A stretch of 64,000 nucleotides of DNA, taken from NCBI GenBank assembly GCA_030704615.1, contig CM060733.1, positions 53,630,001 through 53,694,000 on the forward strand, given 5' to 3'. The DNA comes from Takakia lepidozioides. Its lineage: Eukaryota > Plantae > Bryophyta. This document shows positions 8,063-56,325 of the stretch, piece by piece; position 1 is the first letter of the stretch, and every line of letters starts with the position of its first letter. Under the pieces are notes generated by a model. That model was not told the origin of the DNA and made no database searches. It was given only the letters and a program-made list of their open reading frames with translations. The position numbers were made by a program, and so were the translations under genes.

Positions 8063-10011
8063 CTGTACAGAAGGCGCATTGCCGCTTTGTCCGAGTTCGG
8101 CTGGTCGGTGAACTCGTGGCTCTGGCGGGCATGCGGTATCTCTCGAAAGAACAGGTCGGTTTTGTAGAGCAGAAAGTACCTCGCCACATAGTCGCGTAGG
8201 CTCTCTGCTTCTCCATAAATCTCCAGCTTGAACTGATGTGCTTGGGTGTCAAGCTGCTCTTGCGCATTTGTCGTCACCTGTGGAGATTCTCCATCAGACC
8301 GCAGTCCTCAATAAATACAAGAAATCCATCAGATACAAGAGTAGAAGCGCCAAACAAAGCGTTGGAAAGTACCTCTGAAACCACCATGTCATGCGGTTCA
8401 TCCACATGTCAAATGTGGGGTCAGACAGTTTGTCGGGTTTGGGGAAGTTCCACATGTCCCTTGTACTCTGGGACCCATTCCAGATTTGGAGCCACCGGGT
8501 CTGTCCAACCACCGTGCATATTAGTAAGCGCCAAACACCACGAAAACGAATTGTTGCCACGACAATTTGGTTAAGAATGTATAACCTTTTCTGTTGCATC
8601 CACACATGTTGTGGCTAGACGATGCAGCTTCTCCAATGTCATCGTGGGCTTCCGAGCGCGGGAGTAGTGCTTCCCCACCTCCACCAGAAAGTCGGCACAA
8701 AGGGCGGGATCAGCTATGGCCACGTACTTCACCATCTGCAACTTGTACTTGATGCGGGCCTTCGCCTCCGCAGCTTTGAGATATGATTCCAGTGCCGGGA
8801 GGGTTAGTTTCTTCTCCTCTGACTCCATATAGAACCTCCGCGCATGTGGCAAATCCTGCTGAATTTTTTGTCTGTCAAGAATGCGCACATAAGATTAGAA
8901 ATCCTGGTCCACACTTTTTCTTCTATTGGGGGAGCAGAGACAGATTAGCTCAACAAAAGAGTTCGGAGTTGTACCCGAAATATTTAATCCACCATGGCGT
9001 CCATGCTCAGCCTATACCAGATTCTGTCTGCCTTTGCCTCCAACTTGCGCAGGAGGTCGGCACTGAGCGAATTGGCAAACTCCTGCACCACCTGCTTCCG
9101 GACATCCTTCACTCGGAAGAGCATGTGGGACAAGTTGGTGGCAATGAAGGCATTCTCAGTCACCGTGCAATGCCACATTTCCATTAAATGATACTGAAAT
9201 GAGAATTTGCAACAAATATGACGATTGGCGATGAAATGACTTTCAAATTCAACGTCCAAAACAAGAGGCATTGTAACTTACGAGTTGATGTCTGCCATTG
9301 CAGCTTTGAGAAGACTTCGATCTTTGGGCCCCACAACCTTCAGCACAAACACACTCCACGGCGTAATGCCAATCCAGGTCGTTGGGGTGGGCTTGGGCTA
9401 TGTGCTCCATCTATGCCAGGAGGCGATGATTGCCATCACACACGTAAAACATCTTTCAGGACAAGTGCTGGAAAAGAGAATCAGTAGCAATCAATCTCTC
9501 AAACTCCTCATTTCGTCTTTGCCAATGGGGACCCCATTTGTCCACCTCATCGGAAGTATGGGCACGAGAAGCTCCGTGGTTGTTCTCAATGGAAACATAA
9601 AACGCGGCAGACCCCATTCGATATCCCTCCCGGAAAGAGAATTTCAGTTTTTCGATATCGCCTGGGAGGGCAGGTCTCACCACCTGCAATGATACCAAGC
9701 GGCAGAGAGGAATCCGAAGCTTGGCCGGGTACACCATGCCCCCCAGGACCCTACCAATGTTGTTGTGGCTTGCCTCCAACATCTTGGCAGCGGCCAACTT
9801 CGTATCCGCCTCCAACATGACGTCTGCTGCAGAGGGGTTCTCCGGCAGCTCACCAGGACCGCCAAATCCAGCCTGTATGCTCCGGGTTTGGAGCCTGTGC
9901 CCGAGTAACAATCTTACCACGAACAGTATACTCACACTTGATCACCTGTCAATTCAAGTCCTGGGGAGGGAATTTTAAAAGGGCTAAGTTTGTAAGGTCC
10001 AATTTGTCCAT
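8063..10011 (-). pseudogene. 5' half of an intron-containing ParB/Srx-domain gene (N-terminal part of the ParB-methyltransferase gene)
   Basis: RIPLCRL..VVRPAL..DIEKLKFSFREGY..FYV...KMFYVCDGNHRLLA*MEHI (DGNHR at 9423-9437). Intron 9194-9281; splice donor AG|GTAAAT at 8063/8062. In-frame stops and frameshifts; the ATG at 10011 is tentative. Confidence 0.72.
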
Positions 10012-10034
10012 ATGGGTGTTGTTGTTGGGCTGAC

Positions 10035-10280
10035 CGTGGGGTCGCAAAATAGCCCTTTTCGGGTAGGTTGGAGGGGCCAATTTGCGACGCCCGGGCGTCG
10101 CCAAAAAACGTCGCAATTTTGCGACCGATGGGGGTCGCAATTTTGCGACCGATGGGGGTCGCAATTTTGCGCCGGCGCGACCGGGCGTCGTCAAAAAATA
10201 AATAAATAAAAATCATACTCTGCAATGTCGAATTAGTAACATCCGGGGGTCGCAAAGTGCGACGCCCGGACGTCGCAGTT
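10035..10280. repeat. Cluster of GTCGCAATTTTGCGAC palindromes (24-bp period at 10110, 10134, 10158)
   Basis: GTCGCAA-TT-TTGCGAC is an interrupted 16-bp palindrome (third copy slightly degenerate), with further GCGAC/GTCGC half sites; lies just upstream of the ParB gene. Confidence 0.85.
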
Positions 10281-12082
10281 TAAGGGGGTACATTTGAATT
10301 TAGGTGCGAAAATTTGAATTTGAAATTTGAATTTCAAAAACTTATTGACCATTGACTCCGGCGTTGACCATTGACTCTGGTTATGTCCAAAGGCGATATA
10401 TTCATTGTTCTATATATATTAGGCAATGCATACTTAAACCTAGGACCTCCACGTTATAACATTTCGAAGACACTACAGACTAACCAACACACCTACGATC
10501 ACTAGAAGCATTCGTGTCTTTTCCGAATCGACTGGGTGTCCGCCAACCACTCCGGAACCACTTGGCAGTAAGCGGGACTACTAGAGAGTCGAAACGGACA
10601 ATGTGGGCCCACGGGGGTATTTCAGACGGCGGGCAGAAGTGGGGTCAACGACTCCGGAGTCGTAGCAAAAATCCGGGCTATTTAATTAATTACGTAAATA
10701 CATAAAATTTGAAAAAGCGGAAATTACAAATGGTTCTAATTATTGCACATGCGACTAGAAATTTTCATCCATAATTTGATTAATGGCACCCGTGATTCAG
10801 GGCCACATTTGCTGACGCGTGTTTCACAAAAACAGGTAAAGAAAATATGGCCTCGGTGGAATAGATATTTTAATATGTATTGCCTCCACCTGGAAGTGAC
10901 ATAGAAGGTCCATGGTCCAGCTTGTAGGGTTTGTCGTTCTGAACACCGCCCTGGTGGACATGTATGTTGAATGCGGAAGCATTAAAGATGCGAAGGTAGT
11001 GTTCGACTGTGGCTCAACGAGATGTGGTGTCGTGGAGTGTGATGATCGCATTGGCAACAAGACAAGGATGTATGCATAATTTGTGCAGAGGCAGTGATAA
11101 CTGAAGGAGCAGGATAGAGTGTGGGTCCATATTCATCCAAGAGGGTTGGATTTCAAGCTCCAGATTACCTATGGATCCATGTGGAAGGATAGCTATAAGA
11201 AACCTCCATGGGTAGATGGTTAGCTGGAAGCGGCAGCTGTAGCGGCACAATTGATAAAATCAAGCACCTCAACCATGACCACAGCTTCTGGAAGAGGATC
11301 AAGAGAGGGAGTCCACAATGCCTCTTCTGGAACTTATGGGCATGTGAAGATGCTTTATGAGGCAGGCAGACTGAAAGAGGCTCTACAAATTTTAAGCCAA
11401 AGAGGCATTTCAGCAGATGTAGATACGTATGTGTGTCTCTTGCATAAGTGCATCAAGATGAAAGGCCTAGAAGTTGGAAAGCAGGTGCACACTCACATTG
11501 TCCAAAGTGGATTCACGCCGAACGTTTTTCTACTCAACAACCTTGTCAACATGTATGTTAAGGGGAGCATCATGGATGATCACCAAGTGTTCAACACAGA
11601 ATGCCTCAACGATCTTTGATCACGTGGACTATAATGTTGGCAGGATTACCAAGCATGGGCGTTGTACGAATGCTTTGGAGACCTGTGAGCAAATGATGTG
11701 CGAAGGGGTGAAGCCCAACCACATCGCGTTTGTATGTGTTTGCAATGCATGTGCAAGCCTGGAAAAGGGGAACGAGGTCCATGGTGACATCGGTCAAAGC
11801 TGGAATTGCACCGGATGTCATTCTGAACACTGCCCTGACCTGGACATGTATGCCAAATGTGGATGCATTGAGGATGCAAAGGGAGTTTTCGACACTATGG
11901 CTGAACGAGATGTGGTGTTGTGGAGTGCGATGCTTGCAGGGTATGCACAACAGGGACGTGGGATTGAGGCTTTGGAGACCTATGATCCAATGATGGGGGA
12001 GGGGATGAAGCCCGGCCACTTTGTGTGCATTTGTAATGCTTGTGCAAGCCTGGCAGCCCTGGACAAGGGCAAAGAGGTGCAT

Positions 12083-12835
12083 GGGGATATCATCAAAGTT
12101 GGAATTGTACCAAATGTCATTCTGAACACTGCCCTGGCAGCTCTGGAAAAGGGGAAAGAGGTCCATGGCGACATCTTCAGAGTTGGAATTGTACCAAATG
12201 TCAGTCTGAACCATACCCTGGTGGACATGTATGCGAAATGTGGGTGCATTGAGCCTGGACGAGGGGAAAGAGGTGCATGGGGTATCATCAAAGCTGGAAT
12301 TGTACCAAATGTCATTATGAACACTGCCCTGGCAGCTCTGGAAAAGGGGAAAGAGGTCCATGGCGACATCTTCAGAGCTGGAATTGTACCAAATGTCAAT
12401 CTGAACCATACCCTGGTGGACATGTATGCGAAATGTGGGTGCATCGAGCCTGGACGAGGGGAAAGAGGTGCATGGGGTATCATCGAAGCTGGAATTGTAC
12501 CAAATGTCATTATGAACACTGCACTGGCAGCTCTGGAAAAAGGGGAAAGAGGTCCATGGCGACATCTTCAGAGCTGGAATTGTACCAAATGTCATTCTGA
12601 ACCATACCCTGGTGGACATGTATGAAAATGTGGGTGCATTGAGCCCTGGACAAGGGCAAAGCGGTGCATGGGGTATCATCAAAGCTGGAATTGTACCAAA
12701 TGTCATTATGAACACTGCCCTGGCAGCTCTGGAAAAGGGGAAAGAGGTCCATGGCGACATCTTCAGAGCTGGAATTGTACCAAATGTCATTCTGAACTAT
12801 ACCCTGGTGGACATGTTTGCAAAATGTGGGTGCAA
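12083..12835 (+). repeat. ~195-bp tandem repeat x4 within PPR fragments
   Basis: Units start near 12083, 12279, 12474, 12670 (65-aa period GIIKAGIVPNV...GERGAW). Confidence 0.9.
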
Positions 12836-12852
12836 AGGGATCTAGGATCTAG

Positions 12853-13930
12853 GATGCAAAGGGAGTGTTCGACACTATGGCTGAACGAGATGTGGTGTCG
12901 TGGAGTGCGATGCTTGCAAGGTATGCACGGCAGGGACGTGGGATGGAGGCTTGGGAGACCTATGAGCAAAGGATGGGGGAAGCACATCATGTTTGTGTGC
13001 ATTTGCAATGCTTGTGCAAGCCTGGTAGCCGGCCTGGAGAAGGGCAAGAGGTGCATGGGGATATCATCAAAGCTGGAATTGTGCCAAATGTCAATCTGAA
13101 CACTGCCCTGGCAACTTTGGAAAAGGGGAAAGAGGTCCATGGCGACATCTTTAGGGTTGGAATTGTACCAGATGTCATTCTGAACAAAACCTTGGTGAAC
13201 ATGTTTGCAAAATGTGGGTGCATCAAATGCAAAGGGAGTGTTCGACACTATGGCTGAACGAGATGTGGTGTCGTGGAGTGCGATGCTTGCATGGTATGCA
13301 CGGCAGGGACGGAGCAGGGACGTGGGATGGAGGCTTTGGAGACCTATGAGCAATGCAAGCACATCATGTTTGTGTGCATTTGCAATGCTTGTGCAAGCCT
13401 AGCAGCCGGCCTGGAGAAGGGCAAGAGGTGCATGGGGATATCATCAAAGCTGGAATTGTGCCAAATGTCAATCTGAACACTGCCCTGGCAGCTTTGGAAC
13501 TGGGGAAAGATGTGCATGGCGACATCTTCAGAGCTGGAATTGTACCAGATGACATTCGGAACAATACCCTGGTGAACATGTTTGCATAATGTGGGTGCAT
13601 CTAGGATGCAAAGGGAGTGTTCGACACTATAGCTGAACGACATGTGGTGTCGTGGAGTGCGATATGATGTGCTTGCAGAGTATGCACATCAGGGATGTGG
13701 AATGGAGGCTTTGGAGATCTATGAGCAATGCAAGCACATCATGTTTGTGTGCATTTGCAATGGTTGTGCAAGCCTAGCAGCCGGCCTGGAGAAGGGCAAA
13801 GAGGTGCATGGAGATATCATCAAAGCTGGAATTGTGCCAAATGTCAATCTGAACACTGCCCTGGCAGCTTTGGAAAAGGGGAAAGAGGTCCACATGGCGA
13901 CATCTTCAGAGCTGGAATTGTACCAAGGTG
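12853..13930 (+). repeat. ~375-bp tandem repeat x~3 within PPR fragments
   Basis: ATGCAAAGGGAGTGTTCGACACTAT recurs near 12853, 13227, 13605. Confidence 0.85.
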
Positions 13931-16900
13931 AATGCCTGTCAAATTACCAGATGCAAAGAGGTGCATGGTTGCATCGCCAAAGGCAGCAACTGCAGCGGCA
14001 CAGTTGATAAAGTCAGGCACCTCAACCATGACCACAACTTTTGGAAGAGGATCAAGAGAGGGAGTCCACAATGCCTCTTCTGGCACTTATGGGCATGTGA
14101 AGATGCTTTGTGAGGCAGGTAGACTGAAAGAGGCTCTACTGACTTTAAACCAAGGAGGCATTTCAACAGATTCAGATACGTATGTCTGTCTCTTGCATAA
14201 GTGCATCAAGATGAAAGGCCAAGTGAAGCTAGAAAGCAGGTGCACACTCACATTATCCAAAGTGCACGCCAAATATTTTTCTACTCATCACCCTTGTCAA
14301 CATGTATGTTATGTGCGGGAGCACATGGATGCTCACCAAGTGTTCAACAGAATGCCTCAACGATCTTTCATCACGTGGAACACGATGCTTGTAGGGTGTG
14401 CACAGCAGGGGCGTGGTATGGAGGCCTTGGAGAATGTGCTGAGGGCACCTTCTTCTTGACCTATTTCAGCCTGTTTTTCCCTCTCATCAGACTCGGCCTT
14501 GAATTTACATATTGAATTGTCAAGGACAATGTGGTGAGGGCACCTTCTTCTTCGACCTATTTCAGCCTGTTTTGCCCTCTCATCAGACTCGGCCCTGAGA
14601 TGCATATTGAATTCTATAAGTTAGCTCGTTGGGTGGATCTGTGGTGGTTTGGAATGACTATGACAAGTAACTGCCGATGTGGCAGTAGGAAAGTATCCAA
14701 AACAGATAACAGAGATGAGGAGAAGGTGTGGAATGAATACTTTGTTGACCCCAGTGAATGGTGGAACAACCGAGGCAAAAAGTTGAATGCCTATTAGATG
14801 ACAGAGAGTAGCAGACGCAATTCAGCATAGGAACTAGTGTGATTGGGTGTTTCCTAGGTTGTCATTGTCAGCTGCTAGCAGTAAGGGCAAAGATGAATGC
14901 ATGATTTGTGCAGAGGCATGGATAGTTGAAGGAGAAGGGATAGAGTGTGAGTCCAGATTCATCCAAGAGGGCCGGACTTCAAGCTCCAGATTACCTGTGA
15001 TTCCATGTGGATCAATAGCTACAAGAAACCTAAATCGATTGATCTCATATTACTCTGGGGCGTCTTACATGGCACATTGAACATAGTGGCCAAGTCTCAA
15101 AGCCATGGTCAACTAAAGGCAATAGCTGCAGCGGCACAGTTGATAAAATTAGGCACGTCCTCAACCATGACCGCAGCTTCTGAAAGAGGATCAAGAGAGG
15201 GGAGTCCACAATGCCTTTTCTGCGGGGCATGTGAAGATGCTTTGTGAGGCAGGCAGACTGACAAAGGCTCTAGGTCTGGAAGCTGGAATCAGGTGCACAC
15301 TCATATTATCCAAAGTGGATTCATGCCAAATGTTTTGTCTACTCAATACCCTTGTCAACATGTATATTAAGTGCAGGAGCATCATGGATGCTCGCCAAGA
15401 TTTCTACAGAATGCCTCAGCGATCTTTGATCATGTGGAATATAATGTTGGCAGGATTTACCAAACATGGGTGTGGTAGGAATGCTTTTGGCGACCTATGA
15501 GCAAATGTTGCGTAAAGGGGTGAAGCCCAACCACATCACGCTTCCGCATGTTTGCAATGCGTGTGCAAGCCTGGGACCTCTGGAAAAGGGGAAAGAGGTC
15601 CATGATGACATCGTCAAAGCTGGAATTGTACCAGATGTCATCCTGAACACTCCCCTGGTGGATGTGTATGCCAAATGTGGGTGCATTAAGGATGCAAAGG
15701 GAGTTTTCAACATTATGGCTGAACCAAATGTGGTGTCATGGAACGCGATGCTTGTAGGGTATGCACAGCAGGGACATGGTATGGAGGCTTTGGAGACCTA
15801 TGATCAAATGATGGGGGAAGGGGGGGGGGACCTTCTTCAATAGCACAACGGCTACAACTAGGTAGATGGTCAACTGGAAACAGCAATGAAAGCAACACAA
15901 TTGATAGAACAAGGCCCACTGCTAATGAAGGTATCTTCTTCAACATATTTCACCCTGTTTTCCCCTGCTATCAGAGTCGTCCCTAAATTTTCATGTTGAA
16001 TTCTACAAGTTAGCTCGTTGGTGGATCTATGGTGGTGTTGGAGTGATATTGACACGTTACTGCCAATGTGGTCGACAGGAAAGTATCGAAAAATAAATAA
16101 TAGAGATGTGGAGAAGCTCTGGAATGAATACGGTTCCGACCCCAGTCAATGGTGGAACAATCCAGGCAAAAAGGTGAATGCCTGTTGGAAGCAGATGCAA
16201 AGCATAGAACTAGTGTGATAAGTAGGGTTGGGGTGTTTGCTGGAACAACTCTAGAGTGTTATTGTCAGCTGCTAGCATCAAGGCAAGGATGTATGCATGA
16301 TTTGTGTAGAGGCATGGATAGCTGAAGGAGCAGGGAGTAGTGTGGGTCCAGATTCATCCAAGAGGGCCGGATTTCAAGCTCCAGATCGCCTACAATTCCT
16401 TGTGGAAGCAGCACACACCTCGCACACACAAGAGGTCCTCTTGGGTGCATGGTCAGTCAAATCCTCCATGGGTCATGACACAAGGTCGAGGACAATGTGG
16501 TGAGGGCACCTTCTTCTTCGACCTATTTCAGCCTATTTTTCCCTCTCATCAGACCCAGCCTTGAATTTACATATTGAATGCTGTAAGTTAGCTCGTTGGG
16601 TGGATGTGGGGTGGTTTGGAGTGACTTTGACAAGTTACTGCTGATGTGGCAGCAGGAAAGTACCCAAAAACAGATAACAAGATGAAGAGAAGCTTTGGGA
16701 TGAACACTTTCCGACCCCAGTCAATGGGGGGACAATGGAGACAAAAAGGTGAGTGCTTGTTCGACTACAGAGAGAAGCAATCACTACAACAGATTGCGGC
16801 TTTTATGACTCCCATGGGTGCGTAGTCATGGCAGATTTGTGGCAGAAATGCCATTTGCAGTCGTAAAATGCTTTTGAAGTCATAATGCAAGTCTGGGGAA

Positions 16901-17867
16901 GGCGTATATGCGACTGCATGGCTCCGGACTCTGCGCAACACAGGTCAAACATGTTTGACCACGAATATTGGCATGGCAGATATGACTACTAGTCACGGTC
17001 ATGGCTACACTGGAATGACGTGTACATATTGCTAGACAGACATATGACTTCATGACTCTCATTCTAATGCATTCTGCCAGATCATCACATAGATGAATCA
17101 CTACATGACTGCACGTGTCAACACATGCTTTTCTGGTTATATATATAATATATGAGTATTTATATTTTGAAAAAACGGAGACTCTGACCACTAGAATGAA
17201 TTAAAAAAAAACAAAAACAAAAAGTGCAAAAAGATTTAAAGAAAAACACATGATAGAGTAAGTGGCACAGTGTGTCGCCCTGGTGGTTTGGGATTCAAAC
17301 CCGCTGCCCTTATCCTATATGTGGGATTGTTCGTGACGGTATGTCTGGGCGTTGATCATCCTGTAGGTCTTATGGCCCATAAATGAAGGCGGGTGAAATT
17401 TTCCCCCTCCTCAAGGGCCCGTGGTTTCCTTTAAGAAAAAAAAAAAAAAAATCAAAAATCAAAAAGGGGCTTTTAGGGTTTATAAAAAGGTTTAAAATCT
17501 TAAAAAGTTGCCCATCACGGTAGGGTGAACAGACTTAGAGCAAGTGGGAGGGAGAGAGAGAGATGGCTGGGATTAGAGTGAGCGAGCGGGAGTGAGGGCA
17601 AACATGCATGGGAGTCAGCTTCGTCTTAGCAGGCCGTGTTTCAATCTCTACCCGCTCAGCCCTGATTTTACAACACGGAGGAGAGCTGGCATTAGTTTCT
17701 TAAAGATCCTTCACGATGGTTGGACAACCGCAATCGCAAGGTGTGGCTTTTACTTGGTTGAACGCCGTCATGTCTGTCTTCGTAGCCTACTTTCTTTGCT
17801 GCACGACATCTTGTAGATGCCCCTTAGATTTCCTTTCTAAGCTTCTCCTAGACGACAAACAATTCAC

Positions 17868-20786: not shown

Positions 20787-20964
20787 GTACAATCTAAGCT
20801 TCTCCGTCAGCTCCGTAGGGTTTGTGTTATTGTATGGCAGCGTCCAATTTATATTCCTAGTCATTTTGTTGGTTGATAGATTGCTGTCACAGTACGCGTG
20901 TCACAGTACAAGCTGTAAGAAAGCAAGAGATACATAGTTATACAGTCAAATAGACAACTATCAG

Positions 20965-33310: not shown

Positions 33311-33317
33311 GGGGCAA

Positions 33318-36960: not shown

Positions 36961-36999
36961 GTAGGGAAGCCTAGCCAAACAAGTCATGAAAACAAGTTG

Positions 37000-41449: not shown

Positions 41450-42330
41450 CTTGCTCTGGCGGTCCCCATTAATTTATTTAATTTGAAATAGAATCAGAAT
41501 CATAAGCTGACAGTCATATTTTTATTTTAAATTATTTTAAAAAGTAAAATCGAGAATGTCAAAGCTTGTGGTTTTTCTAAATTTTTAAAATGGGTCTATC
41601 ATGTTTTTATTTTTATTTTTACTAGAACAAATCGAGATAGTTTGTGGTTCTAATTTTATTAAAAAACAAATATCGGGACTATCATGGTATCGATTCTAAT
41701 AAATTAGAATTAAAAAACACCTGCCACCTCTGCTAGTCCAAATTTTATATTTGAAAAGTTAAAATTATTTCAAAGAAAAATCGGGACCGCTAGTTCCGAC
41801 GGTCCCGATTTTATCCAAATTTTCTTTAAAATGAACCATTACGACCGATGGCAATCCTCAAAAAACAAAAAAAAACTACCAGGTGTAGCAGCCCCGCTTT
41901 TATCCACAAAAATATCTTAAGAAAAAATGGGACCGCCAGCTTTGGCCGGGCCAATTTTACCCAAATAAATAAATAAAACGTCAACTCTGGCGGTCCCGAT
42001 TTTGTCCCAAAAATATAAAAAATGGGATCGTCAGCTCTATCTATCCTGTTTTATTAAGTATTTCTTAAAAATTCAAGACCGCCAAAGCTGGCTGTCCCAA
42101 ACTTATTAAATAATTTCTTCAAAACCGAGGCCGCCAGAGCTGGTGGTCTTGAATTTATTAATTTGTTTTTTAAAATTAAGACGGTCAGAGCTGGCAGGCC
42201 TGAATTGAAATATTTATTAATTATAAGAGGATCACCAGCATCGACGGTCTTAGATTAATTACAATATTTTGAATTATTTGGAAATACCAACACTGGCGGT
42301 CCAAATTTCATTTAAATAAATTTTTAAAAT
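41450..42330. repeat. Subterminal-type array of GACCGCCA(G/A) / TGGCGGTC motifs in AT-rich spacers
   Basis: More than 10 imperfect inverted pairs; same motif family as 37.1-37.7 kb and 56.5-57.3 kb. Confidence 0.7.
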
Positions 42331-42909
42331 ATATATTGGACCTAATTAGACTTAATCAAACTTCTAAATTTTGTATACTGTCTATTTCATTGACATGGCA
42401 TTTTTTGGTTGTTTGTTTAGGCCACGTGATTGTTTTTGCGTAATTTTTTAATGTTGTCGTCAACTGCGTGTTCTTCCCCATTGATGCTTGTGAGTAACAC
42501 GTAAAATGCTTGGGACCCCATCAAATATTCGTGCACGAAATCCCCTTGCAGTTTTTTAATATCGTATGTCTGTGCAGGCCTCACTGCAGGAGGACTGCAG
42601 GCATATATACTATCTTGAACAAGGGAATGAAGAGCGTACCGTTGGGAACACGTATGAACTGAGTTCTCAGTTTGTGTTCGTTTGATGACATGAACTGAGT
42701 TCACCTTCGAAGATGACATGAGGTATCTCACTTTGTTTTCATAGTGCTCTTCAATTTCTTCCTCATCCTCTTCATCAATATCTGTTTGCTATGAAGGCTG
42801 ACTTCCCTCCGTTTTATTTATTTATTTATTTATTTATTAAATTTGTTTTTAGCCCCTGCACATCACCATGTCAGCGAATATCAGTTTGAGTTGTCAGATT
42901 ATGATTGCG

Positions 42910-43135
42910 TTGGGAGGAGGTGCTGGATTAAGCTTGTTTTTACGCAAGCTTAATCTGACGCTTTATATAGTATACAATATATAGAAAGAGATGCGGACAC
43001 CATGGAGGTAGGAGGAGGTGTCGGATTAAACTTGCTTTGAATCAAGCTTAATTTGGCGCTCTATATAATGTATGTACAACAAGAGATGCAAACACCATGG
43101 AGGTGGGAGGAGGTGCAGATTAAGCTTGCTTTATC
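42910..43135 (+). repeat. ~95-bp degenerate tandem repeat x3
   Basis: GGAGGTG..GATTAA.CTTG.TT near 42915, 43013, 43107. Confidence 0.7.
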
Positions 43136-43139
43136 TACG

Positions 43140-44400
43140 AGTTATGTCTATTGCCATTTGTGACATGCAGTCCGAAGATACGGAGTCCCAAATGATCATG
43201 TGGAATTCTCTGCTTTCTGTCATGGAATCCAATGAAGATACATGCACAAATATCATAGGGTTCATGGCTGATAATACGCAGGCAAACTTCAATGCAATGC
43301 CCCGAGTTTTTGGATCGGTAATCCAAAGGTCCTCATGCCAAATAGCTAGGGAGTGTACCTGCCTTTTCCATTGGGTCTCTAGAGAGGCAGACGAAAATGT
43401 ACATAAGATCCGAGATCTTCAAGCGGAGCATATGAGGCTCTGCTTCATGTACGAGAATGCTACTACAATGGGTGAGGCTAATACGGACAAGGTGGCTTCG
43501 TCTGGGACTGCCGATATTGAGGACGGTGTCAAAAAATTAGATGACTGATTGGGCTTCTAGCGTTTCAGATACCTGCAATCGGGAGCTTCCATGATAATAG
43601 TAAGCTTTCTTTCACCTATGGTTTTCCCACGCGTCTGCCCAAATTAGTTGAATGTTCCATGCTTCAACTCCGCACACTCTTAAAATGACGTTCATTCATA
43701 TTTCTGTTGCAAAACATACCCTTTGAAGACATTGCAGATATGCCCTCCTGCAATTTGGCGGAAACCGTTTACAATGCTTGGCTGTAGCAATCTGGCAAAT
43801 CAGGCCGACATCTCTACATTGCTACAACAGACGATATTGTGCGAGCTCTTACTCAGCAAATAAGATATCGTGATATTCTGAGAGGACGGTTTGGAGGCAA
43901 AGGACCTGATATAACAAAGTTGATGTTGACGGCTGCAACAAGGGCCAAGGCAATGAACAGGTGTACCATAGGCTCGCCTTTGCAATCAAGGGTTCCACAT
44001 CTGGAAGGCGAGGAAAGGTTCGGTTCATGCAAACGCAAAATACACCTTCAGGTTCAGATGGAGATTCACATCGCCATGACAGGGTTAACTTCTCTGATCC
44101 CATGATGTCTCCACTAGTACCAATGTCATCTGGTAACAAAGTTGTTGGTGCATCCTCATTTACCCAACCCAATCATTTGCTGGTCATTTGTCTCTTGGGG
44201 GCCAATACCACTGCAATTGCGAATAGTGTAGAAGACCTCAGGGGGGCTGTGCAGGAATCTGCACATCAAATGGACTGCTGCTGGGTCTAGAGTTGGCTGC
44301 ACAGCAATGACGGCCAAAACTTTTGTGAAATATAAGTCGATGATAGCGAAAGGCTCTGCAGGCACCCCCAACTCTTACGTTCACATGGGGATTGTTTTTC
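43140..44400 (+). pseudogene. MULE-like DDE transposase remnant
   Basis: IAICDMQSED..GFMADNTQANFNA..RECTCLFHW (CxxH) ..PSCNLAETVYNAWL (catalytic E context); probable intron starting ~43600; stops and frameshifts. Confidence 0.6.
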
Positions 44401-45167
44401 CATGAGCAGTGAGCAGACCAGCCATGAGCATGAGCAAAAGAGAATCGGAGGCGTATCTTGACAGATTCGGCGGAATTACACACTACACCACCTAATTCCG
44501 CGGGGTGTAAATGGCGACGGTTCTGGGGTAAATCGGCGCCGAATTATCCCAAAATCCGCGGAAAGAAAAAGAAAATGCATAGAAAATGGAGTAGGAAACG
44601 AAATTAAAATTGGACGGTGATATGTAAACAAGTGTGGGCAAGTCAACGCCGATTTGCTCTTTATCCGCGCAAAGCTCGTTATGAAATACACATAAAATGG
44701 CGCCAAAAAGTGTTGAGAAAAATATGAAAAAAAAAAGATAAAAAATACGGGCCGCCGTTTATTTGCAAGTCGCGCCGATTTCCCATTGCAGCATTATCCA
44801 CAAACAATATGTGTGGACGTCGTCGGAAAAAAAGCGGAATGCCGGTGGGAAGAATATCGGAAGATGAAAATTATATCAATTAACCATCATGCAACTGATA
44901 GACACAGTTCATGCAAAAAATTATTCCATTGATATGAAACAATGACTCTTAGCAGCTGAAACGTCTCCACAGGGTCACAAAGTATATATCTGTAATTCAC
45001 TTGTAGATGAAGAAGTCTGAGCACAGATTACAAAGGAAAGAACTTTGGCTGTACTTATAATATTCGACACCGAAGCCCAGAGAACCAAAGGCAGTACTGG
45101 TACTTTTGACTAGAAACTAATTGGTTGAAGCGTAGTTCCTCGAAAAGATAAGGTCTAAAAACATTCT

Positions 45168-45800
45168 CTATCTTCCTGTGTTCACATCCACAACACGAAT
45201 CCGTGAATCCTCAAAAAACAGGTCAAGAATGAGGAGTGGTGAGTGTGTCGTCCACCGCCCATTGTTCATTGCTGGATGGAGATGGCATACATAAAGATAC
45301 AACACGTCTATATTCATGAAGTTCGTGAAGACGTGCTGATATTGAAGGCCAGGAGGCAGGTAATCTATGTCCGCGTCAAACTGCCGTGCATCAACCTGAA
45401 ACCTATTTCGAGTCTGCCTTAAAGTCAGCAAGATATTCCCCGCCGCAATTGACTGAAAGAGCAATTGATGAGTCCGATCAGGGTGACAATACTGTGGAGG
45501 TGCAATGTAAGCATGGGTGTACGACACGACCAATTCTCCACAACAACATGTCATGAGGAAGAGCCAAACATGGCGTTGTCCATCTGTATCTCTCACAACA
45601 AGGATCCACTGCATTCCACTTCATTCCGGTCTGACCCAATGCAAGTCAAACAAAACTGCTCGAAATAGGGTCACCGTGCGAGTATTGCCAGCGTTTGTAA
45701 AGTGTAACTCCACCACAATGTCGCCCATTTCTGGTTCTCGCCACAGCGATCGTCGGCATCCACTTCGGCGAATGCAGGAGGATGTATTGCAATAAGACAT
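45168..45800 (-). pseudogene. Unknown ~210-codon reading frame broken by one TGA (probable TE cargo)
   Basis: ORFs 45621-45962 and 45168-45614 are in the same frame; globular-looking composition; no family recognised. Confidence 0.35.
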
Positions 45801-47870
45801 ACTGCTGGTAAACGTGGAAGTGAAGAAAAAAACGTATGAGCTCCAAGATGAGCATGAACATTGAATTTTGAAAGCATCAGCCTCGGACTCTCCTTTATTG
45901 CGAGCCCTCCTTCCAACGACTACGTGTTCATGACCCAAATAACAGTTGAATGAGAAAAACAATGGTCAACAGGTGGTCTGACAAACACATGGGCTGTTTC
46001 ATCTGTGCATGTCAGCTTTGTTTGTGCTGCCTTATTAGACAAGTACAAAATGGCAGATATGGGCCACATGCATGTCAGATTGGGTTTTTGTGAATGCAAG
46101 TATTGCAGGTGACATGATGTCAAATGTCAGAAGTCGGCGCCGACTTCCCAGTGAATCGCAGGTCGGTCAGAAATAATATAAAGTGGAGCCCACCCCAAAG
46201 TTACTCGGAATTGAAAATGTGGAATTTGAATTGCAGCATAAATTTCGAAAATTTCCATGTTCTTCCTTTACTAACGGCAAGTCGGCGTCGACTTCCCCAG
46301 AGATGTCCTAAAATTTGTTAACTTCCTCAAAGTATATGAACAATTGTCCTTCATTCATTTAGCCTCACAAGAATGATTTGTCAGGGCCGGAATCACCCAA
46401 CACGCATCTATACCTTGAAATAGTTAGTTGGTGCCGAATTCAGTGTCTTTGAAATCCCTAATTTGCAAAAGAGAAGATGGGGTGGGCATTCATCCACATA
46501 ATCTCGGAAGAGCACAAATGACCTCAGGTTTTTGCTATAGAATGTGACGACAATTTATAAACGACAAAATTACAACGTTTGAGTGCCAAGTCCGCACCGA
46601 TTACACAGGCTCCAACACGAACGCAGGAGCTCAACTACAGGTGATAAATTATTCCTCAACCAACATAAAATGTACCTGGAAAGTCATCACAGAAAGATCG
46701 TCTGCATAAACGGAAAATAACAAAAGGTTCGCCTACACAATGGGCAGGCGACGTTCATCTGCAACCATGTATCTATGCAAGCGGAGTGGAAACAGTGCCC
46801 ACACAAAGTCAAAGTTCGCACGGAGTCTGCTGGCTATGGACACTCCATACAAATACTACAGGCATCGTAAGCAGACCCTTCATCAACAACAATACATTCG
46901 GGAAAAGCCGTGGAAATGAAATCCAATGACAAACCAATCCAATGCGGATCAGAGTCGTCGACGCCCATCTCGTCAACGTCATCGTCGCCGATTTCGACTT
47001 CAAGCCCTTCTTCCGAGTCGTCCGAGGTCGAGGAATCAGATAATGCATCGAGCTGTGGGACTATAGATGCATGGAGTACTTCGTGTCTTGCAAGGCAATC
47101 CTCTAGTATATCTGCCTATTTTCTAGTAATTTTCTAAGCAGAAAACCCCTTTAAAACTAATTATTTAGGCTGGAAATTCACTCATAATACAAAAATAGGC
47201 ATTAGGTAGGAACTTATCTAAGCTTTCCAATGACCTATGGCTTGGCCTCTAGATACTTCACTAACCCCTTCTCATTGCCCAAAAACCCTTCTCATGGTGA
47301 GGAAACCATAGGGAAATGGCCTTATAGGTCAAAACACCCCCTTAGGCCCTTAATATGTCATCCTGGTCAGAAAGCTCCCTGTCGTCGTCCTCAAAATGGT
47401 CAATCACCGCTTTACTAGAATTGTCATTCATCACACGATCATTATAATTATCATCTTTTCATCTCATGAACAAGACTTACACATTCAACCATTTCGAATT
47501 TTGTCCCCTAGTGACTCAGGGCGTATAGAACAATACATTATGTACGGCGCCTTTGCAGCAAACCATGTTGGGGTCGGTATTTTTGGAGGAGGAAAGGAAG
47601 GATTCAAACAGAGTTGTAGTCGAAAGTATTGTTGTGCTCCACGATGATTTTGACGACGGCAGGGATTGGCGAGTTCCACCATCGGACAACGTCATATACA
47701 GGGCTGTTGGGGACTTCATTTGCCCGCAAAATGCGTCTTCTATCCTAGCGCTTCCACGAAACAATCCGCGAATCAGAGAGTGGGTACCTCAAAGAGAGAA
47801 GTCCGCAACGAAGTAAATCTAGAGCCGCTGTGCCGCCAGTCTATTTTTCGTCTGAATGGCACAGCCTACA

Positions 47871-48650
47871 TTTCCATCCGAGGGCGCTCAGATGAAGTCG
47901 TCTTGGGGGAGAGGCCGACACGTGACTGACAGAGAACATCCCCCAGATGGAAAAACGGCGCCGAATTTCCATCCGAGGGCGCTCGGATGAAGTTGTCTCG
48001 GGGGGAGAGGCCGATACCTGGCTGACAGAGAATATCCCAGGGATGGAAAAACAGCGCCGAATTTCCATCCGAGGACGCTCGAATGAAGTCGTCTCGGGGG
48101 GAGAGGCCGACTCCTGGCTGACAGAGAACATCCCCCGGATGGAAAAACGGCGCCGAATTTCCATCCGAGGGCGCTCGGATGAAGTTGTCTCGGGGGGTGA
48201 GGCCGACACCTGGCTGATAGAGAACGTCCCCCGGATGGAAAAACGGTGCCGAATTTCCATCCGAGGCCGCTCGGATGAATTCGTCTCGGGCGGAGAGGCC
48301 GACACTTGGCTGACAAAGAACCTCCCTCGGATGGAAAAACGGCGCCGAATTTCCATCCGAGGGCGCTCGGATGAAGTCGTCTCGGGGGGAGAGGCCGACA
48401 CCTGGCTGACAGAGAACGTCCAACGGAGGGAAAAAGGGCGCCGAATTTCCATCCGAGGGCGCTCGGATGAAGTCGTCTCGGGGGGACAGGCCGACACCTG
48501 GCTGACTGAGAACGTCCCCCGGATGGAAAACGGCGCCGAATTTCCATCCGAGGGCGGTCTGATGAAGTCGGCTCGGGCGGAGAGGCCGACACGTGGCTGA
48601 CAGAGAACATCCCAGGAATGGAAAAACGGCGCCGAATTTCCATCCTCGGA
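47871..48650. repeat. 96-bp minisatellite x~8 with internal hairpins
   Basis: Unit ATGGAAAAACGGCGCCGAATTTCCATCCGAGGGCGCTCGGATGAAGTCGTCTCGGGGGGAGAGGCCGACACCTGGCTGACAGAGAAC..; shorter related units at 48790-48930. Confidence 0.95.
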
Positions 48651-50819
48651 CGCCCGTATCGACCCATCATCAACAATTTTCAGTCGTTGCATTACCTTTC
48701 TCGCGTTATTTTGTCTAATCCGACACTCAACTTAGAGTTTTCTCCCTTCGGGCCACTTTTTTGGCACGTTATCCCTACAAATGTCGTCCGCTGGAAACAA
48801 ATTCGGAGCCGGTTTTCCATCCGGTCGAGCTCTGACTTACCTGCACGATGGAAATTCGGAGCCGGTTTTCCATCAGGCCGAGCTCCGACTTACTTGCACG
48901 ATGGAAATTCGGCGCCGTTTTTTCCATCTAGCAGGTTGTTAATGAAGTCTCGGGGGGAGGGAGGGCCAGTTGGCGCCTATGGGCGAGCTCCATACCTATG
49001 ACATTCATGTGCGCCGGCCCGCATTAAATGCCCCCCGCCGTCGGTTTTGAATTGGACGTTCCACACGGATTCCGCGCTTGCTTCCCGGATACGCCTTGGA
49101 CACCTGATGTGACGGGTGGATGAAGTTCCATTGGAGGCCTGTACGCACACATTCTGCGGGAGATTTTTTGGTTACTCGGACTTATGCCACGTGGAGAAGG
49201 GCGTGGCTCTCTTGAGAGAAACCCCACATCAAGACCGCGGCACAAACTCAAGCCTTTGTACTACGGGCGGCATCCAACGTCTCGCATGGCCAAACTGAAG
49301 CTCCAGCAGGAGATCCCTTGTCTTGCTCACAGCCCGCGCCAACTGAAGCCGAGCACTCTCAGGCGAGCCCCTGCTTCTTTCGCTTTATGAAACATGTGTG
49401 GTCGTCTTCTTCGCTTTGTTTTGATTGTTTTGGCATCCTTCTGCTGCTTCTGCATGTGATTGTTAGCCATTGCTTGGTTTTGCTTTCATGGTTGTTCCAT
49501 GCCACTCCCTACTCTGCCTCTCATGATTGTGGCTCGTTTGTTGCTTCCATTTCATTGCGATTGTGGTGCTCATGTTGGGGATGACAGAGTGAAGACGAGC
49601 GCGACACGGTGGTGGTATCATCGACAGCTCCAACTGCTCGAGCAGTCACTCCAAAAGCGGCTACTCATCGAGCGCAGTCAGACAATCGTCGGCAGCAATC
49701 GTCGGACCTAGTGCTTGGCATTTTTGGATCGCCAAAGTTGGGGCAGGAGGGCACACACAAACTTGCTCCTTTTGTTGGTGGACGGGAGGACCTGCAGCGG
49801 GAGTACTCCATAATAGGCATTCGGGAGGTTGGTGCAGCCGGCATGGCAGGTGAAGGGCGTTGGATGAGGACAGCAGATCCGCCAATTGAGGAAGCTGATG
49901 CACATGCAGGAGGGCCCGCCCACGCAAAGAAGAAGAGGAAAGCCAAGCACATGCAATCCCCGGCGAGAGAGCCATCACAGGCCGTGGAGGGGGGAGTAAA
50001 CACGGCGCGTGAGGGTGTCAGTTCCCCTCAATCAAAGGTGGTCATCCTGGAGGTCTCCCTTGCTGCTACGCCTAGTAAGAAACAGAAGGCCCGTGAGAGG
50101 GCAAAAGAGAGGGCAAAAGAACAGGCGAGACAAAAGGCTAGCCAGGAGGCAATGAAGAGGCCAGGGGTGTGGAAATGACAGATGCCCATGTAAGCGAGGG
50201 ACACACAGAGACGGTGGATCCTTCCAAGACACCAGAACAGGCAGTAACACACCGGCTGCATTCTTACCGGTTACGCCATCGCGGGTGGGAGCAGCCCCTG
50301 CAATTACCCATACGGTGGAGACTGGGGGAGGGGAAAGAACACCACAAAGACCACGGATTGTAGGAGGTGGAGGTGAAGCCGGGGAGAGGGCAGTAGAGAC
50401 GGGGAGAGGGCACGATGTGGATGCGACTGTGCCTCGTATCACTCGACCTAGTTTAGTGAGAATGATAAAATACACTAGTGTTTTCGAAATGAAAATAAAA
50501 CTGGTCGACATGTTGCGAAAACTAATGGTGGCGTATTGGAATTTGTATTATTATGATCTTAAGGTGAATAACCCGAGGAGGTGCACCAGTTTTGGTTACT
50601 CATTGATTTTGCAGCAGAATTACTTGGTGTTGTTCGGGATGAATATTTGAGAGAGGGTTGTCAATTCGCATGTCCGGATGTGGAAATGAATTATGTTCTT
50701 TTCTGCTGCATGTCCTTATGTTTATTTAGGGGCTTTAACATGTACGTCATCAATAGTTGCACATATTAGATGACAAATAGATTACTTGGTTGGAACCTGT
50801 AATCATTAGAAGAAAAACA

Positions 50820-51850
50820 CGGAATAACCACTCTGGTAACCACTCATTTTGAGTGGAAAAAAAACACCCAAACACTCTGGCCCTAGAGTGGTCCAGACCC
50901 AGTGGATCTTGACTCAGCAGTGGTTAAAGACATGACGTGTCCAAAGTGATTAAAGACAGTGGTTACGATCACTTGCCTTCGAGTCCAGCTGTTCGCTTAC
51001 GTGTCACGGTGGTAAATTAACCACTTATGACATGTCATAGTGGTAAGCCAAGGCACGTCTGACGTGTCACAGTGGTAAACTAACCACTTCAGAACATAGT
51101 GATCCAACCACTTCCACCATATGCGACGTGGACGCAGCAACTCCGTCGATCATACTTAGCAGTGGACGGACACGTGTCCGTATCCATATGGACACGTGGC
51201 CGAATCCAGTTAGACGATTATGGGCTCCATTATCTAGACACGTGGCGATATTGCAAATGAGCACGTGCCCTATTTTAGGGATATGCTGAAAAATGCAATG
51301 ACTTCACAAACAACTATGTGAGTGAGACTTAAATGATTCTAATAGTCATGAAACGAGAATAAACAATGTATATTATCACTGAATGTGTGGTTCTAATAGT
51401 ATTGATGTGTGCTAAAACCACTTACTGAGTGGTTCTACCAGTATCAATGTAGTGGTTATACCAGTATCAATGTAGTGGTTAGGTTGTGTGCTAAAACCAC
51501 TGACGAAGTCATCCAGTGTGTCCCACCAAGTAGGAACCATGTATTTGAATTATTACTACCAGAGTGGTATGTAAGTGATTGGTACATCTGGAGGAGTATA
51601 ACCACTCTTGCATATTGTCACAGTCTTACATATACCACTGACAGAGTGGTACCAGTATCAATGTAGTGGTTAGGTTGTGTGCTAAAACCACTGACGAAGT
51701 CATCCAGTGTGTCCCACCAAGTAGGAACCATGTATTTGAATTATTACTACCAGAGTGGTATGTAAGTGATTGGTACATCTGGAGGAGTATAACCACTCTT
51801 GCATATTGTCACAGTCTTACATATACCACTGACAGAGTGGTGTGTAAGTG
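50820..51850. repeat. ACCACT/AGTGGT-rich subterminal-like region with a 191-bp exact tandem duplication (51460-51650, 51651-51841)
   Basis: Direct comparison; the duplicated ORF translations in the track are identical. Confidence 0.85.
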
Positions 51851-52054
51851 ATTCATACATTCCCATACAATTCTCCTACAATTCCCATACATTCGAAGTG
51901 AATCTGCAAATCCAAATACTCTTGAAGATTCACCATTCAAAAAACATAATAGAATCCAAGACAGTAAGTGTTGGAACAGAGTCAACAAAATCCAGCCATG
52001 AGAAAGGGTGACATACTACATCTACACTACGTCTCCGCAGGCATGCTAGAAGCC

Positions 52055-52762: not shown

Positions 52763-53447
52763 GGAGGGCTGCTATTTCATGAGCGGTATGAGCATGAGCG
52801 GAAAAAAAAAAACATGAGCGGACAATTGTGTGTCCACGAAAATAGGGTTAGGAGGCATGGAAATAGGGTCATTCGAAGCTGGAATGTGGCACCAGTGGAC
52901 TCGTCATAACAATGAAATGCAATATTTTATTGCAAATTTTGTGGCAAGCCACATCTATACAAGTGTGTCATAACTGTTATAGCCGGAATGGGCACTACTC
53001 TCCTACACCCTCCGAGGAACTTGCCCCACCTTCCTCCTCATCCCCCTCATCCCCAAGACAAATCCACGAGCTTGTTGGGCTCTAATAGCTATGCCTCCTC
53101 CCCTCATCTTCATTTTCTTGAGGCTTGCCTCGTCTAAAATCTGCTGTATACGAGTAGGTTCGGAAGACCTCCTAATGGACACCGAAGCAAGCCGGGTAGC
53201 ATAAGTAGGAAGGATGTAGTCCTTTTTTGGACTTGGCATGAAATCCCCCCTGGCAAAAAAAGGCACGTTCCTCCTACCCATGAACTGCGGTGTAGACGTC
53301 CCTCCTGCAGTACTTGGCATCCCACAGTAAGAACAAATCCACTTCAAGAATGTCAATACCAGCAGAAGCAGAAAGGGTCTTTCAATGAAATAAGAGAGCA
53401 AAGGGAGGTGCCTCACGAAATCAGGAGGCAATTTACAATGCAACCAC

Positions 53448-56325
53448 TCACTCGTAAATCGGGGGCTCCTCGGCCTCGATCCCAACTTGTACCTCCCCCT
53501 GCTCCTTCTCGGATTCTTCCTCATCCTCCGAGGATGCCTCTTCCTCTTTTGGCAGACATTCAGCCGCTGCAAGTTCGGAGTTGTGGAGGGCAGTATCTGG
53601 CTCAAAGGCGAAGACATGCCTGTCGGACAACGTCGCAGCCCACATTGAAGCACCTGAGGGACAAAGCGGGCGGTTAGTAGCAGGCGGCATGCAATTGCAA
53701 TCGGGCCAGGGGACATACTGTGCACGTGAAGGCTTACCCGTGCCGCATGTGAGGTCAAGAATCCGCCCTTGGACATCGGAGCACGTCTCCATGAGGGTTT
53801 GGATGAAAGCAGGGCTCCCGATCCGGCTGTACCGCCACGATTTGCATGTCTTTGTGTCCTTCGGCATACTGGAGTGGGGCACATAGTTGTAGAGGACATT
53901 GTAGGTAACAGGGTCCACAGAGGCATCAACAAGACGACCGTCGTTGCAGAATTTGAACGTAGACCCTCTCTTCACAAAACAATATGCCTCAAACACCAAT
54001 GTCTGCACATCCAACAAAAGAGGGATCAACTCCAAGGTCTAGTTTAGATACACCACGATATGAAGTGAAGGCAATAGATTGATAACTTACACTTTGGCCC
54101 TCTGTTCGCAACCCCTGCATATTGATGCAGAACCATTTTTTGAGGAGGACCGGGGTGGGACTTTCAGTGTCCACCTTGCCACAACATTCTCTGTGGTCTT
54201 CCCTCTTGTGGCAAGGACCACCATACATCCACCGTCATCCAGGAGCATCCCCGCCAGCCCAAACCCAGCTCTCCAGTAGTCCTCCATAAACTTGTTCTAG
54301 GTGGGCACACCATCCAGGCCCTCCAGCAGCTCCCCATCTGGAATATCGAGGAGAATCATATCGCAGGCTCTCTCCACCTCAAACCCCCCCCCCCCCCCAA
54401 GTGCTCTTACAATCCGTGCTCACAGCCGTGAAGAATTCCATCATGGCTTCCAAACCAGGGGTGTCTTTAGGCTCTGTACCGGCAGCCCTCTTCTTGGCTT
54501 TCCCTTCAGCTCCTCCAGAGACTTGTTGTGTGCCACCTTCTTCGCCCTGGCAGCCAGAGCGTCAAGGAAGCTCTCATTGAAGCATTGGATGATTGTTGGG
54601 GGTTCTAGCTTTGGCCTCTGGGGAAACATCACCGCCGAATACCGCCGTGTAGGCTCGCCCTCAAATGCCAACTTCTTGGCAGAGCCAGTCCCAGTCCGAA
54701 CTGACTTGGGAACCCGGACAACCGGTGACTTGGTAGCAGCAGCAGCAGTCACAGGACCTTGCACAAAGTCGTCATCGGAGTCACTACCTTCGGGCCCCTC
54801 CTGCGCCTCTTCTCGTGCCCCGGTGGTTTTCTGTTTTTTAGGGGTTACTGCAGTCCCCTGTTTCCGTGTCCTTTTCTTTTGTCCTTTATTCTTCTCATTC
54901 AACTTCTCCTAAATACTTGCCTGAGCAAGCTCTGCCACTTTCCTGGACTTGGCAAGCGCTTTCGCCTCCTTTGGACCCAGCGGAGGCAGCGGAGCCCGGT
55001 TTTGGCGGGCCTCAGCCTCCGAGCATCCAGCTTCAATTGAAACTCAGGCGTCGAGCGAGCCGGGTGGAAGGTCCACATACCAAGGGCAGTCGGGCAAATG
55101 CTCCAGATGCCACTCCTTCACGATAGCATCAGTGTACATGGAGTCAGCTCTAGGGTTCCTCCATGCGAGGAAGAATGGCGGCTCGAAGGACAGATGACCT
55201 TTCTCCAATAGGGAGAACTTGCAATACCTGCATTCAAGTAACCCACAGAGAATCAGGTCCCGGGAATGAGGTTAATGTTTCGGTAAGAAATTGTAAAAAT
55301 GGTGCCGGATTTCCATGCGGGGGGTGCCCGCTGCTCCCGGCTCCCCATGGTGGCGGGCAACGAAACTGGTAATTCGGCGCCATTTTTTCTGTGGGCGAGG
55401 CAGCCCCTTCTGGGACTTAGCCACTTTGGGGCCCAAGTTGAATAAATGGCACCGAAATTCCAAATTCGGGCCCCGAAAATGGCTAAGTCCCGGGGTAGCT
55501 GGCACTCATTCTAGAAATTCGGCTCCATTTTTCCAGGTTGGGGCCCAGCCATTTCTGGGACTTGGCCACTTTCGGACGCAGCCTGGAAAAATCAGGTTGG
55601 GGCCCAGCCATTTCTGGGACTTGGCCACTTTTTCGGACGCAGCCTGAAAAATGGCGCGAATTTGGCAGTTCTGGGCCCCAAAAATGGCTAAGTCCCGGGG
55701 GTGGCTGGCACCCATTCTGGAAATTCGACGCCATTTTTTCAGGTTGGGGCCCAGCCATTTCTGGGACTTGGCCACTTTCGGACGCAGCCTGGAAAAATGG
55801 CGCCGAATTTGCAGTTCTGGGCCCCGAAAATGGCTAAGTCCCGGGGGTGGCTGGCACCCATTCTGGAAATTCGACGCCATTTTTTCAGGTTGGGGCCCAG
55901 CCATTTCTGGGACTTGGCCACTTTCGGACCCCAACCTGGAAAAAATGGCTCCGAATTTCCAGAATGGGTGCCAGCCACCCCCGGGATCTAGCCATTTTCG
56001 GGGCCCGGAACTGGAAATTCGGCGCCATTTTCCAGGCTGGGTCCGAAAGTGGCCATGTCCCAGAAATGGCTGGGCCCCAACCTGGAAAAATGGAGCCGAA
56101 TTTCTAGAATGGGTGCCAGCCACCCCCGGGACTTAGCCATTTTCGAATCTCGAAATTCGGCGCCATTTTTCCAGGGACTTAGCCATTTCTTCACAACCAG
56201 TTGTCATGCCCCACACAAGCCGTTTTACATCCAGGAACTCCGGGGACTACAATGGCCACAGATCAAAGAGGAGCACTGCATATTTACCTGTACAGAAGGC
56301 GCATTGCCGCTTTGTCCGCGTTCGG
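53448..56325 (-). pseudogene. 3' half of ParB-fused beta-class amino (N6A/N4C) DNA methyltransferase gene
   Basis: Intron 55228-56287 joins RLLYR|YCKFSLL in phase. Lys/Glu-rich linker, then motif IV-like CDMILLDIPDG (54333-54347) and LLDDGGCMVV. Then PAFIQTLMETCSDVQGRILDLTCGTG|ASMWAATLSDRHVFAFEPD (motifs X, I, II) after removing an 84-nt GT-AG intron at 53654-53737. Stop at 53448-53450; internal stops present. Confidence 0.78.
55310..56200. repeat. Intronic ~140-bp composite repeat array that inverts near 55910 (long fold-back)
   Basis: Units GAAATTCGxCGCCATTTTTTCAGGTTGGGGCCCAGCCATTTCTGGGACTTGGCCACTTTCGG..; 55927-56190 is the reverse complement of the preceding units. Confidence 0.9.

Follow-up and report, generated by a model that had tools for sequence, protein, structure and literature searches.

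A 64,000-nucleotide stretch of the bryophyte Takakia lepidozioides (GCA_030704615.1, contig CM060733.1, positions 53,630,001 to 53,694,000; hereafter the window) carries two broken copies of a gene that joins a ParB/Srx-fold domain to a domain resembling the beta-class N6/N4 DNA methyltransferases. At a rough probability of 0.55, we favor the interpretation that copies 1 and 2 are dead accessory genes of large plant DNA transposons, mostly Mutator-like, whose product would be a self-recognition and anti-silencing factor and would use its methylase-derived domain for binding, not for writing. The gene is read as transposon cargo because a transposase stands head-to-head with it in six relatives and in the window, across the tree of the ParB domain. 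Recognition of an own site is proposed because a palindrome enriched in the window is absent from related loci, and because there are precedents in red algae and in the VANC protein. In this scheme, the protein would bind as a dimer to the palindrome of its own family, here TGGAAA-N3-GGCGCC-N3-TTTCCA, with the ParB domain acting as a nucleotide-gated loading or spreading module. The loaded protein could then protect its own element against host silencing or activate it, by analogy with VANC for VANDAL, and the methyltransferase-like domain probably still binds S-adenosylmethionine or a flipped base.

As read from sequence, the ParB part and the methyltransferase-like part are one real spliced gene. 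A HMMER search with the reading frame at 53451-54035 returned seven relatives, with locus L001 the best; a profile scan extended these to 319 related loci and 505 related proteins, and a spliced model was searched exon by exon. Both halves of the gene lie in order within 4 kb on the L001 contig and are likewise collinear in L005, L006, and L007, while the whole gene is present in L011, L023, L090, L091, and L092. Those exons of L001, L011, and L023 that were read are free of stops. The earlier note on this DNA, which had assembled the gene from two overlapping pieces, proposed a search for single copies with both halves contiguous; the family has them in the relatives' contigs, where L001, L023, and L092 are apparently intact. 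Many of the Joint Genome Institute (JGI) contigs with relatives are presumably from peat-moss-associated samples.

Intron positions and phases agree among the window copies, L001, and L023. The proposed splice RLLYR|YCKF across intron 56287-55228 is in phase, intron 53737-53654 has GT..AG borders, and the motifs DGNHR, DIPDG (54347-54333), DLTCGTG, and FAFEPD all lie where they had been placed. Two boundaries required revision. An 88-nt intron at 9194-9281 joins its exons out of frame, and its acceptor at 9194 was rejected in favor of the homologous one at 9165 (AG mutated to AC), which gives an in-frame intron of 117 nt. Copy 2 had been taken to end at 53448; this stop was rejected as the gene end because the GT at 53451 is a splice donor that precedes a conserved last exon, running from 53273 to ~52995. 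That exon scores 72 against L023, a score reached by none of 500 shuffles, and more than 10 distinct relative loci share its PFF..PSP..LP.Y motif. Pfam gave nothing significant for the window's own pieces, word-index searches with single pieces gave no matches within their limits of length and sensitivity, and PDB sequence-profile searches with three exon alignments gave chance matches only. No relatives came from the first, single-piece metagenome scan, from two scans of viral sequences, or from one of prokaryote genomes; each used one short pattern and has little bearing on origin.

We regard the predicted ParB/Srx fold of the N-terminal domain as settled, in agreement with the earlier note. 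An AlphaFold model of the L001 ParB exon built on a 28-row family alignment reached a predicted local distance difference test (pLDDT) score of 88.5, compared with 41 for an earlier model from 8 alignment rows. Foldseek ranks 1-44 are all ParB, Noc, KorB, Srx, SbnI, or SerK-type chains (best E 0.011, probability 1.00), and VIA gives a Z score of 7.7 to KorB (root-mean-square deviation 2.5 over 90 residues) with ParB/Srx-type chains at ranks 1-11. In the Atlas, the same model matches ParB_N at a template modeling score of 0.59, and the top matches of the three structure searches include ParB, Noc, KorB, PadC, and sulfiredoxin. The GxxR nucleotide-binding motif, DGNHR, is near-invariant across the family. 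At the level of sequence, the Pfam ParB family matched no family member, DUF1015 matched two members weakly, and the middle region of the gene had no Pfam match.

The C-terminal part appears weakly related to the beta-class N6/N4 methylases. Motif IV precedes motif I, the order of the beta class, and the domain is spread over three exons. PF01555 matched 4 of 12 members of the motif-I exon (best E 0.006, below the cut-off), the Atlas neighbor is N6_N4_Mtase at 0.92, and those annotated phage matches with a named product are all DNA methylases, but at E 7-10. Features resembling PF01555 follow in order: a strand-D-x-P start, a later Trp, the K of REKS, motif I, a small-residue helix, and an acidic motif II. 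The motif order and the weak PF01555 relation support a beta-order, methyltransferase-like C-terminus as in the earlier note, although its catalytic motif is non-canonical. Among ~25 distinct copies, intact ones included, motif IV reads D-[I/L/V/Y/C]-P-[E/D/S/N/R]-[N/G], with Y, F, or W in none; neither the catalytic motif (D/N/S)PP(Y/F/W) of beta-class amino-methyltransferases nor the SPPY of the DN4MT1/N4CMT-type N4C methyltransferases was found in them. Because no copy has the aromatic residue, the DIPDG of copy 2 is the family state rather than decay. Motif I takes the form D-x-[T/H/N/S]-x-[G/S/M/N]-T-G, in which the F is lost and the first G is often lost, while the E-x-D of motif II is retained. 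With motif IV non-canonical and motif I degenerate, N6-methyladenine (6mA) or N4-methylcytosine (4mC) activity is not to be assumed, and the "4mC/6mA writer" of the earlier note is not supported as it was put. The family-wide absence of the stacking aromatic would put canonical 6mA/4mC writing under even odds, and it predicts either a pseudo-enzyme reader or unusual chemistry.

The domain may nevertheless be an active amino-methyltransferase with a non-canonical loop, in which the conserved Trp of PxWN or the acidic residue replaces the Tyr; it would then write 6mA or 4mC on the palindrome or close to it, as a self-mark. Several residues that such an enzyme would use are kept across relatives of 40-50% identity (the D and P of motif IV, the REKS lysine that corresponds to HPTEKP of a phage methylase, the D..TG of motif I, and the E-x-D of motif II), and N4/N6 methylase is the annotation of the comparable protein from Ectocarpus. 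Against this, position 4 of motif IV is aromatic in 0 of ~25 copies, although N4CMT has a Tyr there, which is modeled to stack on the target base (PMC10406627), and several intact copies have S, M, or N in place of the first G of motif I. We consider an active writer possible but doubtful.

The intron shared by the two copies supplies a candidate site for binding. It holds a 146-bp array with units in both orientations, the core of which is the interrupted 24-bp palindrome given above. The palindrome occurs 22 times in the window against 0.06 expected, is confined there to the introns of the two copies and to the 96-bp array region at 47870-48925, and was found in none of the related loci searched. 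That two repeat units with no relation to each other contain one and the same site would argue for selection on the site. In most relatives the array-bearing intron measures 80-370 nt; in L014 it is 3.1 kb with a different array. At L014:12118-14100 and L028:4860-6150, long introns in this region of the gene contain arrays of different repeats, particular to each relative. A further family of palindromes, GACCGCCA-N4-TGGCGGTC, lies in AT-rich arrays at 37470-37550, 42077-42150, and 56535-56900, one of which flanks a third remnant of the gene while another abuts the 5' break of copy 2. The sister palindrome occupies 44500-46600, and a third palindrome type is located near the third remnant (42746-42444). 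A RING-H2 gene fragment (46690-47100, minus strand, E 8e-11) falls within the stretch of sister palindromes listed in Table 1, and basic, low-complexity reading frames with no Pfam match (49609-50650, plus strand) directly follow the 96-bp array.

In L092, L035, L014, L037, L038, and L052, the sequence upstream of the gene encodes a long DDE transposase on the other strand, and with the window all seven upstream Mutator-like cases are head-to-head. L037 was left out of the tree as a near-duplicate, which leaves five distinct relatives in this arrangement; the transposase-linked loci are dispersed over the ParB tree. The D-D-CxxH-W-E pattern of the transposase, read by eye in L092, we take to be Mutator-like. 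A perfect 25-bp inverted repeat in L092 (6933-6957 and 14594-14618) brackets the intact gene but not the transposase, with no target-site duplication seen. Given that no member of the lineage of copies 1 and 2 was seen with a transposase, and that copy 1 forms a long branch of its own in the ParB tree, the carrier is read from relatives, among which Mutator-like appears the better bet and CACTA possible.

Transposon cargo was also the proposal of the earlier note and is supported; CACTA as the carrier is not, since the commoner neighbor is the head-to-head Mutator-like transposase. The proposed link to a CACTA end is not borne out here, as the 29 CACTACs of the window are about what chance would give (22.7), the copy at 10471 starts a sequence running away from the gene, internal to another repeat, and no enclosing pair was found. 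Over the gene, summed depth in the organism's own reads is ~237,000; at 9920-10050 it drops to 415, and on the repeat at 10038-10930 it is back at 16,000-40,000, about tenfold lower than on the gene. The repeat that bears 10471 is a separate family, joined to the gene by a rare junction. Near copy 2, the CACTACs were rejected as element ends: 52993 lies within the coding tail, and 52592 and 52025 lie within a host repeat. Neither CACTA termini enclosing the gene nor a 3-bp duplication was found, in copies that are truncated and may have lost an end, and the window has no CACTA-type Tnp2 transposase. The CACTAC at 44481 with its sister palindromes is the only residual hint of such a link in the window; neither an element terminus nor a target-site duplication was demonstrated there.

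It is conceivable, if doubtful, that the lineage of copies 1 and 2 was carried by a CACTA/EnSpm element and that the palindromes are subterminal sites for a transposase helper, which would be compatible with the interpretation that we prefer. In the group L081/82/85/86, a CACTA Tnp2 transposase lies upstream in tandem, whole though decayed and directly adjacent in L081 and L086 (PF02992, E 1e-51); the sister palindromes follow a CACTAC; and red-algal accessory genes switch transposon families (bioRxiv 10.1101/2025.02.11.637652). Weighing the other way are the missing CACTA transposase and the outward-facing 10471 of the window, and L035, the closest tree sister of L081, which is head-to-head with a Mutator-like transposase. 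The position of the CACTA-linked group beside Mutator-linked L035 would fit either a host switch or a nested insertion. One further candidate, L067:12790-14484, was rejected as a CACTA transposase after a check.

Copies 1 and 2 overlap by ~390 nt (7721-8100 and 55943-56325, 91.5% identity in a pairwise comparison), as the earlier note had reported. The exon share of this overlap is 38 nt, identical at 37, and the remainder is intron. On the coding strand the C-terminal piece comes before the N-terminal one; the two are therefore independent, oppositely truncated copies and not a single gene that an insertion divided. At 7720, where copy 1 breaks off, a contig from three runs of one sample crosses the junction without differences, so the break is no assembly error. 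Both are pseudogenes, as previously proposed, with stops or frameshifts in each; the ParB/Srx exon of copy 1 has two in-frame stops and a frameshift near 9347. Most other copies in the reads of this organism are free of the stop at 9458 and of the 9347 and 8864 frameshifts. Summed contig depth over the gene body is 2-4 x 10^5, compared with ~57 in single-copy contigs; this is depth and not copy number, and it shows that the ParB-methylase-like gene is a very abundant family in the source organism.

Table 1. Features of the ParB-methylase-like gene copies and associated sequences, in positions of the window.
Feature	Position	Strand	Basis or remark
Copy 1, start of array-bearing intron, broken at 7721	7721..8062	-	Junction crossed by contigs
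Copy 1, middle exons, some small introns possibly still within	8063..9164	-	Collinear matches to L001, L005, and others
Copy 1, intron following ParB exon, acceptor mutated to AC	9165..9281	-	Position and phase 2 as in L001, L023
Copy 1, ParB/Srx-fold exon	9282..9872	-	40% identity to L001 exon, E 2e-27; 5' acceptor at 9873 inferred
Piece of separate CACTA-type repeat abutting copy 1, GCGAC palindromes	10038..10930	+	Related to CACTAC-ended piece 25949-24900
Third remnant, partial ParB exon, different lineage of family	42444..42746	-	tblastx to L001, E 8e-15, and tree
Mutator-like transposase remnant, head-to-head with third remnant	43132..44063	+	Matches L092 transposase at 45% identity (E 1e-29) and at 35% (E 1e-20)
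CACTAC, then dispersed sister palindromes (core TCGGCGCCGA)	44481..46600	+	Core matched 14 times within 2.7 kb; shuffles give 1.3
Tandem array of 96-bp units with flanking sites, 10 further 24-bp palindromes	47870..48925	.	
Copy 2, last exon (PFF..F.PSP...LP.Y), after intron 53451-53274	52995..53273	-	3' end approximate
Copy 2, exon encoding motif II (FAFEPD) plus an acidic tail, after intron 53737-53654	53452..53653	-	
Copy 2, exon ending in motif I (DLTCGT), after intron 54090-54003	53738..54002	-	
Copy 2, exon(s) with conserved YCKF block, basic/acidic linker, motif-IV region; stops and frameshift	54091..55227	-	
Copy 2, intron of 1060 nt, 146-bp tandem and inverted array, 10 copies of 24-bp palindrome	55228..56287	-	
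Copy 2, last 38 nt of exon common to copy 1; 5' break at 56325	56288..56325	-	37/38 identical

Several observations weigh against a Mutator-carried self-recognition factor. The L092-type transposase has no match in Pfam, NCBIfam, or PDB, and neither terminal inverted repeats nor a 9-bp duplication was found in L092 and the other loci, whose element ends possibly lie outside the fetched DNA. About two thirds of the relatives with at least 4 kb upstream have no transposase match there, whether decayed or out of range, and the lineage of copies 1 and 2 was never seen beside its transposase. Several intact relatives show no obvious array, and no RNA run supports expression of the gene.

A more far-reaching alternative, which we consider unlikely, is that non-seed land plants harbor an old and very abundant transposon system in which a ParB-type nucleotide clamp on element-specific, parS-like palindromes works with a rewired methyltransferase that deposits a non-5-methylcytosine mark, or carries out new chemistry, to shield the element from silencing, with site and protein diversifying by family. 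It is very unlikely that the gene is a captured or domesticated host gene spread passively in Pack-type fashion with no role for the element: some intact, intron-rich relatives have no visible transposase (L090, L091, and L023), but the head-to-head layout is fixed in distant lineages, decayed paralogues are many per sample, and the arrays are family-specific.

The remainder of the window resembles a repeat-rich land-plant genome, with pentatricopeptide repeat (PPR) fragments, a cation-efflux gene, and pieces of a long interspersed nuclear element (LINE) and a Gypsy element. Decayed PPR-gene fragments with 195- and 377-bp tandem units occupy 10930-24500 (plus strand) between the inward-facing CACTA-type pieces 10038-10930 and 25949-24900, and this stretch with its flanks is possibly one Pack-CACTA element. 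Nested among the fragments is the LINE, with endonuclease and reverse transcriptase (17868-20786, plus strand; PF00078, E 1.5e-25). The host gene is a spliced cation-efflux gene of MTP type (2300-3900, minus strand; PF01545). At 51459-51841, an ACCACT-rich stretch contains a 191-bp tandem duplication whose units are 100% identical; it is either a recent duplication or an assembly artefact. At 59882-64000 (plus strand), a Ty3/Gypsy element encodes gag and protease along with a C5 cytosine methyltransferase domain in frame (PF00145, E 5.5e-12). Ty3/Gypsy elements with a C5 methyltransferase have been described in charophyte algae and dinoflagellates.

The combination of ParB and methylase in a transposon gene is not new, since an accessory gene joining ParB to an N4/N6 methylase domain has been published for Ectocarpus, with reports of such genes in transposons of algae dating from 2025. 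Its Sola1-1_Ec32 element encodes a 1104-aa accessory protein with ParB-like and N4/N6 methylase domains, for which self-binding and self-modification were proposed (PMC12477816). A literature search found no description of a ParB-methylase accessory gene family in land plants. The window's own copies are dead and add little beyond a candidate site and the family features. Self-recognition by the algal ParB-methylase proteins is likewise a proposal, and the intact L001, L023, and L092, together with a defined candidate site, make the idea testable.

Compared by description, the plant gene and Sola1-1_Ec32 share a ParB-like and a methylase or methylase-like domain in one protein, and in both a large DNA transposon encodes this protein and its transposase on different strands (PMC12477816); the Ectocarpus system differs in its brown-algal host, its Sola carrier, and its recognizable methylase domain. 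Red-algal Plavaka elements (EnSpm superfamily) and the Chondrus Mutator genes PAG2/PAG3 also resemble it, with a ParB-like gene beside inverted-repeat tandem arrays and an N6-methylase accessory gene (bioRxiv 10.1101/2025.02.11.637652). There, however, two genes are involved, one fusing ParB with a 2-oxoglutarate oxygenase and the other the methylase with a SET domain, whereas the plant ParB and methylase-like domains form one. Marchantia DN4MT1 and bdelloid N4CMT are, like the plant family, eukaryotic proteins of beta-class prokaryotic origin with motif IV before motif I (bioRxiv 2021.02.12.428880; PMC10406627). They are host genes with TSPPY/SPPY and demonstrated activity, while the plant family has D-x-P-E/D and is transposon cargo; the Marchantia paper reports TSPPY for DN4MT1 and does not mention ParB (bioRxiv 2021.02.12.428880). 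Bacterial ParB, Noc, and KorB share the ParB/Srx fold and the G-x-H/R-R nucleotide motif (DGNHR), with parS as the counterpart of the palindromic candidate site. Unlike bacterial ParB, the plant gene has no identified helix-turn-helix domain, and cytidine triphosphate binding or clamp formation would apply to it only by analogy. VANC of VANDAL, like the plant gene, is a transposon-encoded second gene with element-specific targets that evolve as tandem repeats (PMC5735166), and VANDAL/VANC has been named the only system shown to recognize and modify its own transposon sequence (Bostrychia preprint, bioRxiv 10.1101/2025.02.11.637652). The activity of VANC is demonstrated and no sequence relation to the plant gene is shown, whereas the role that we propose for the plant protein is inferred.

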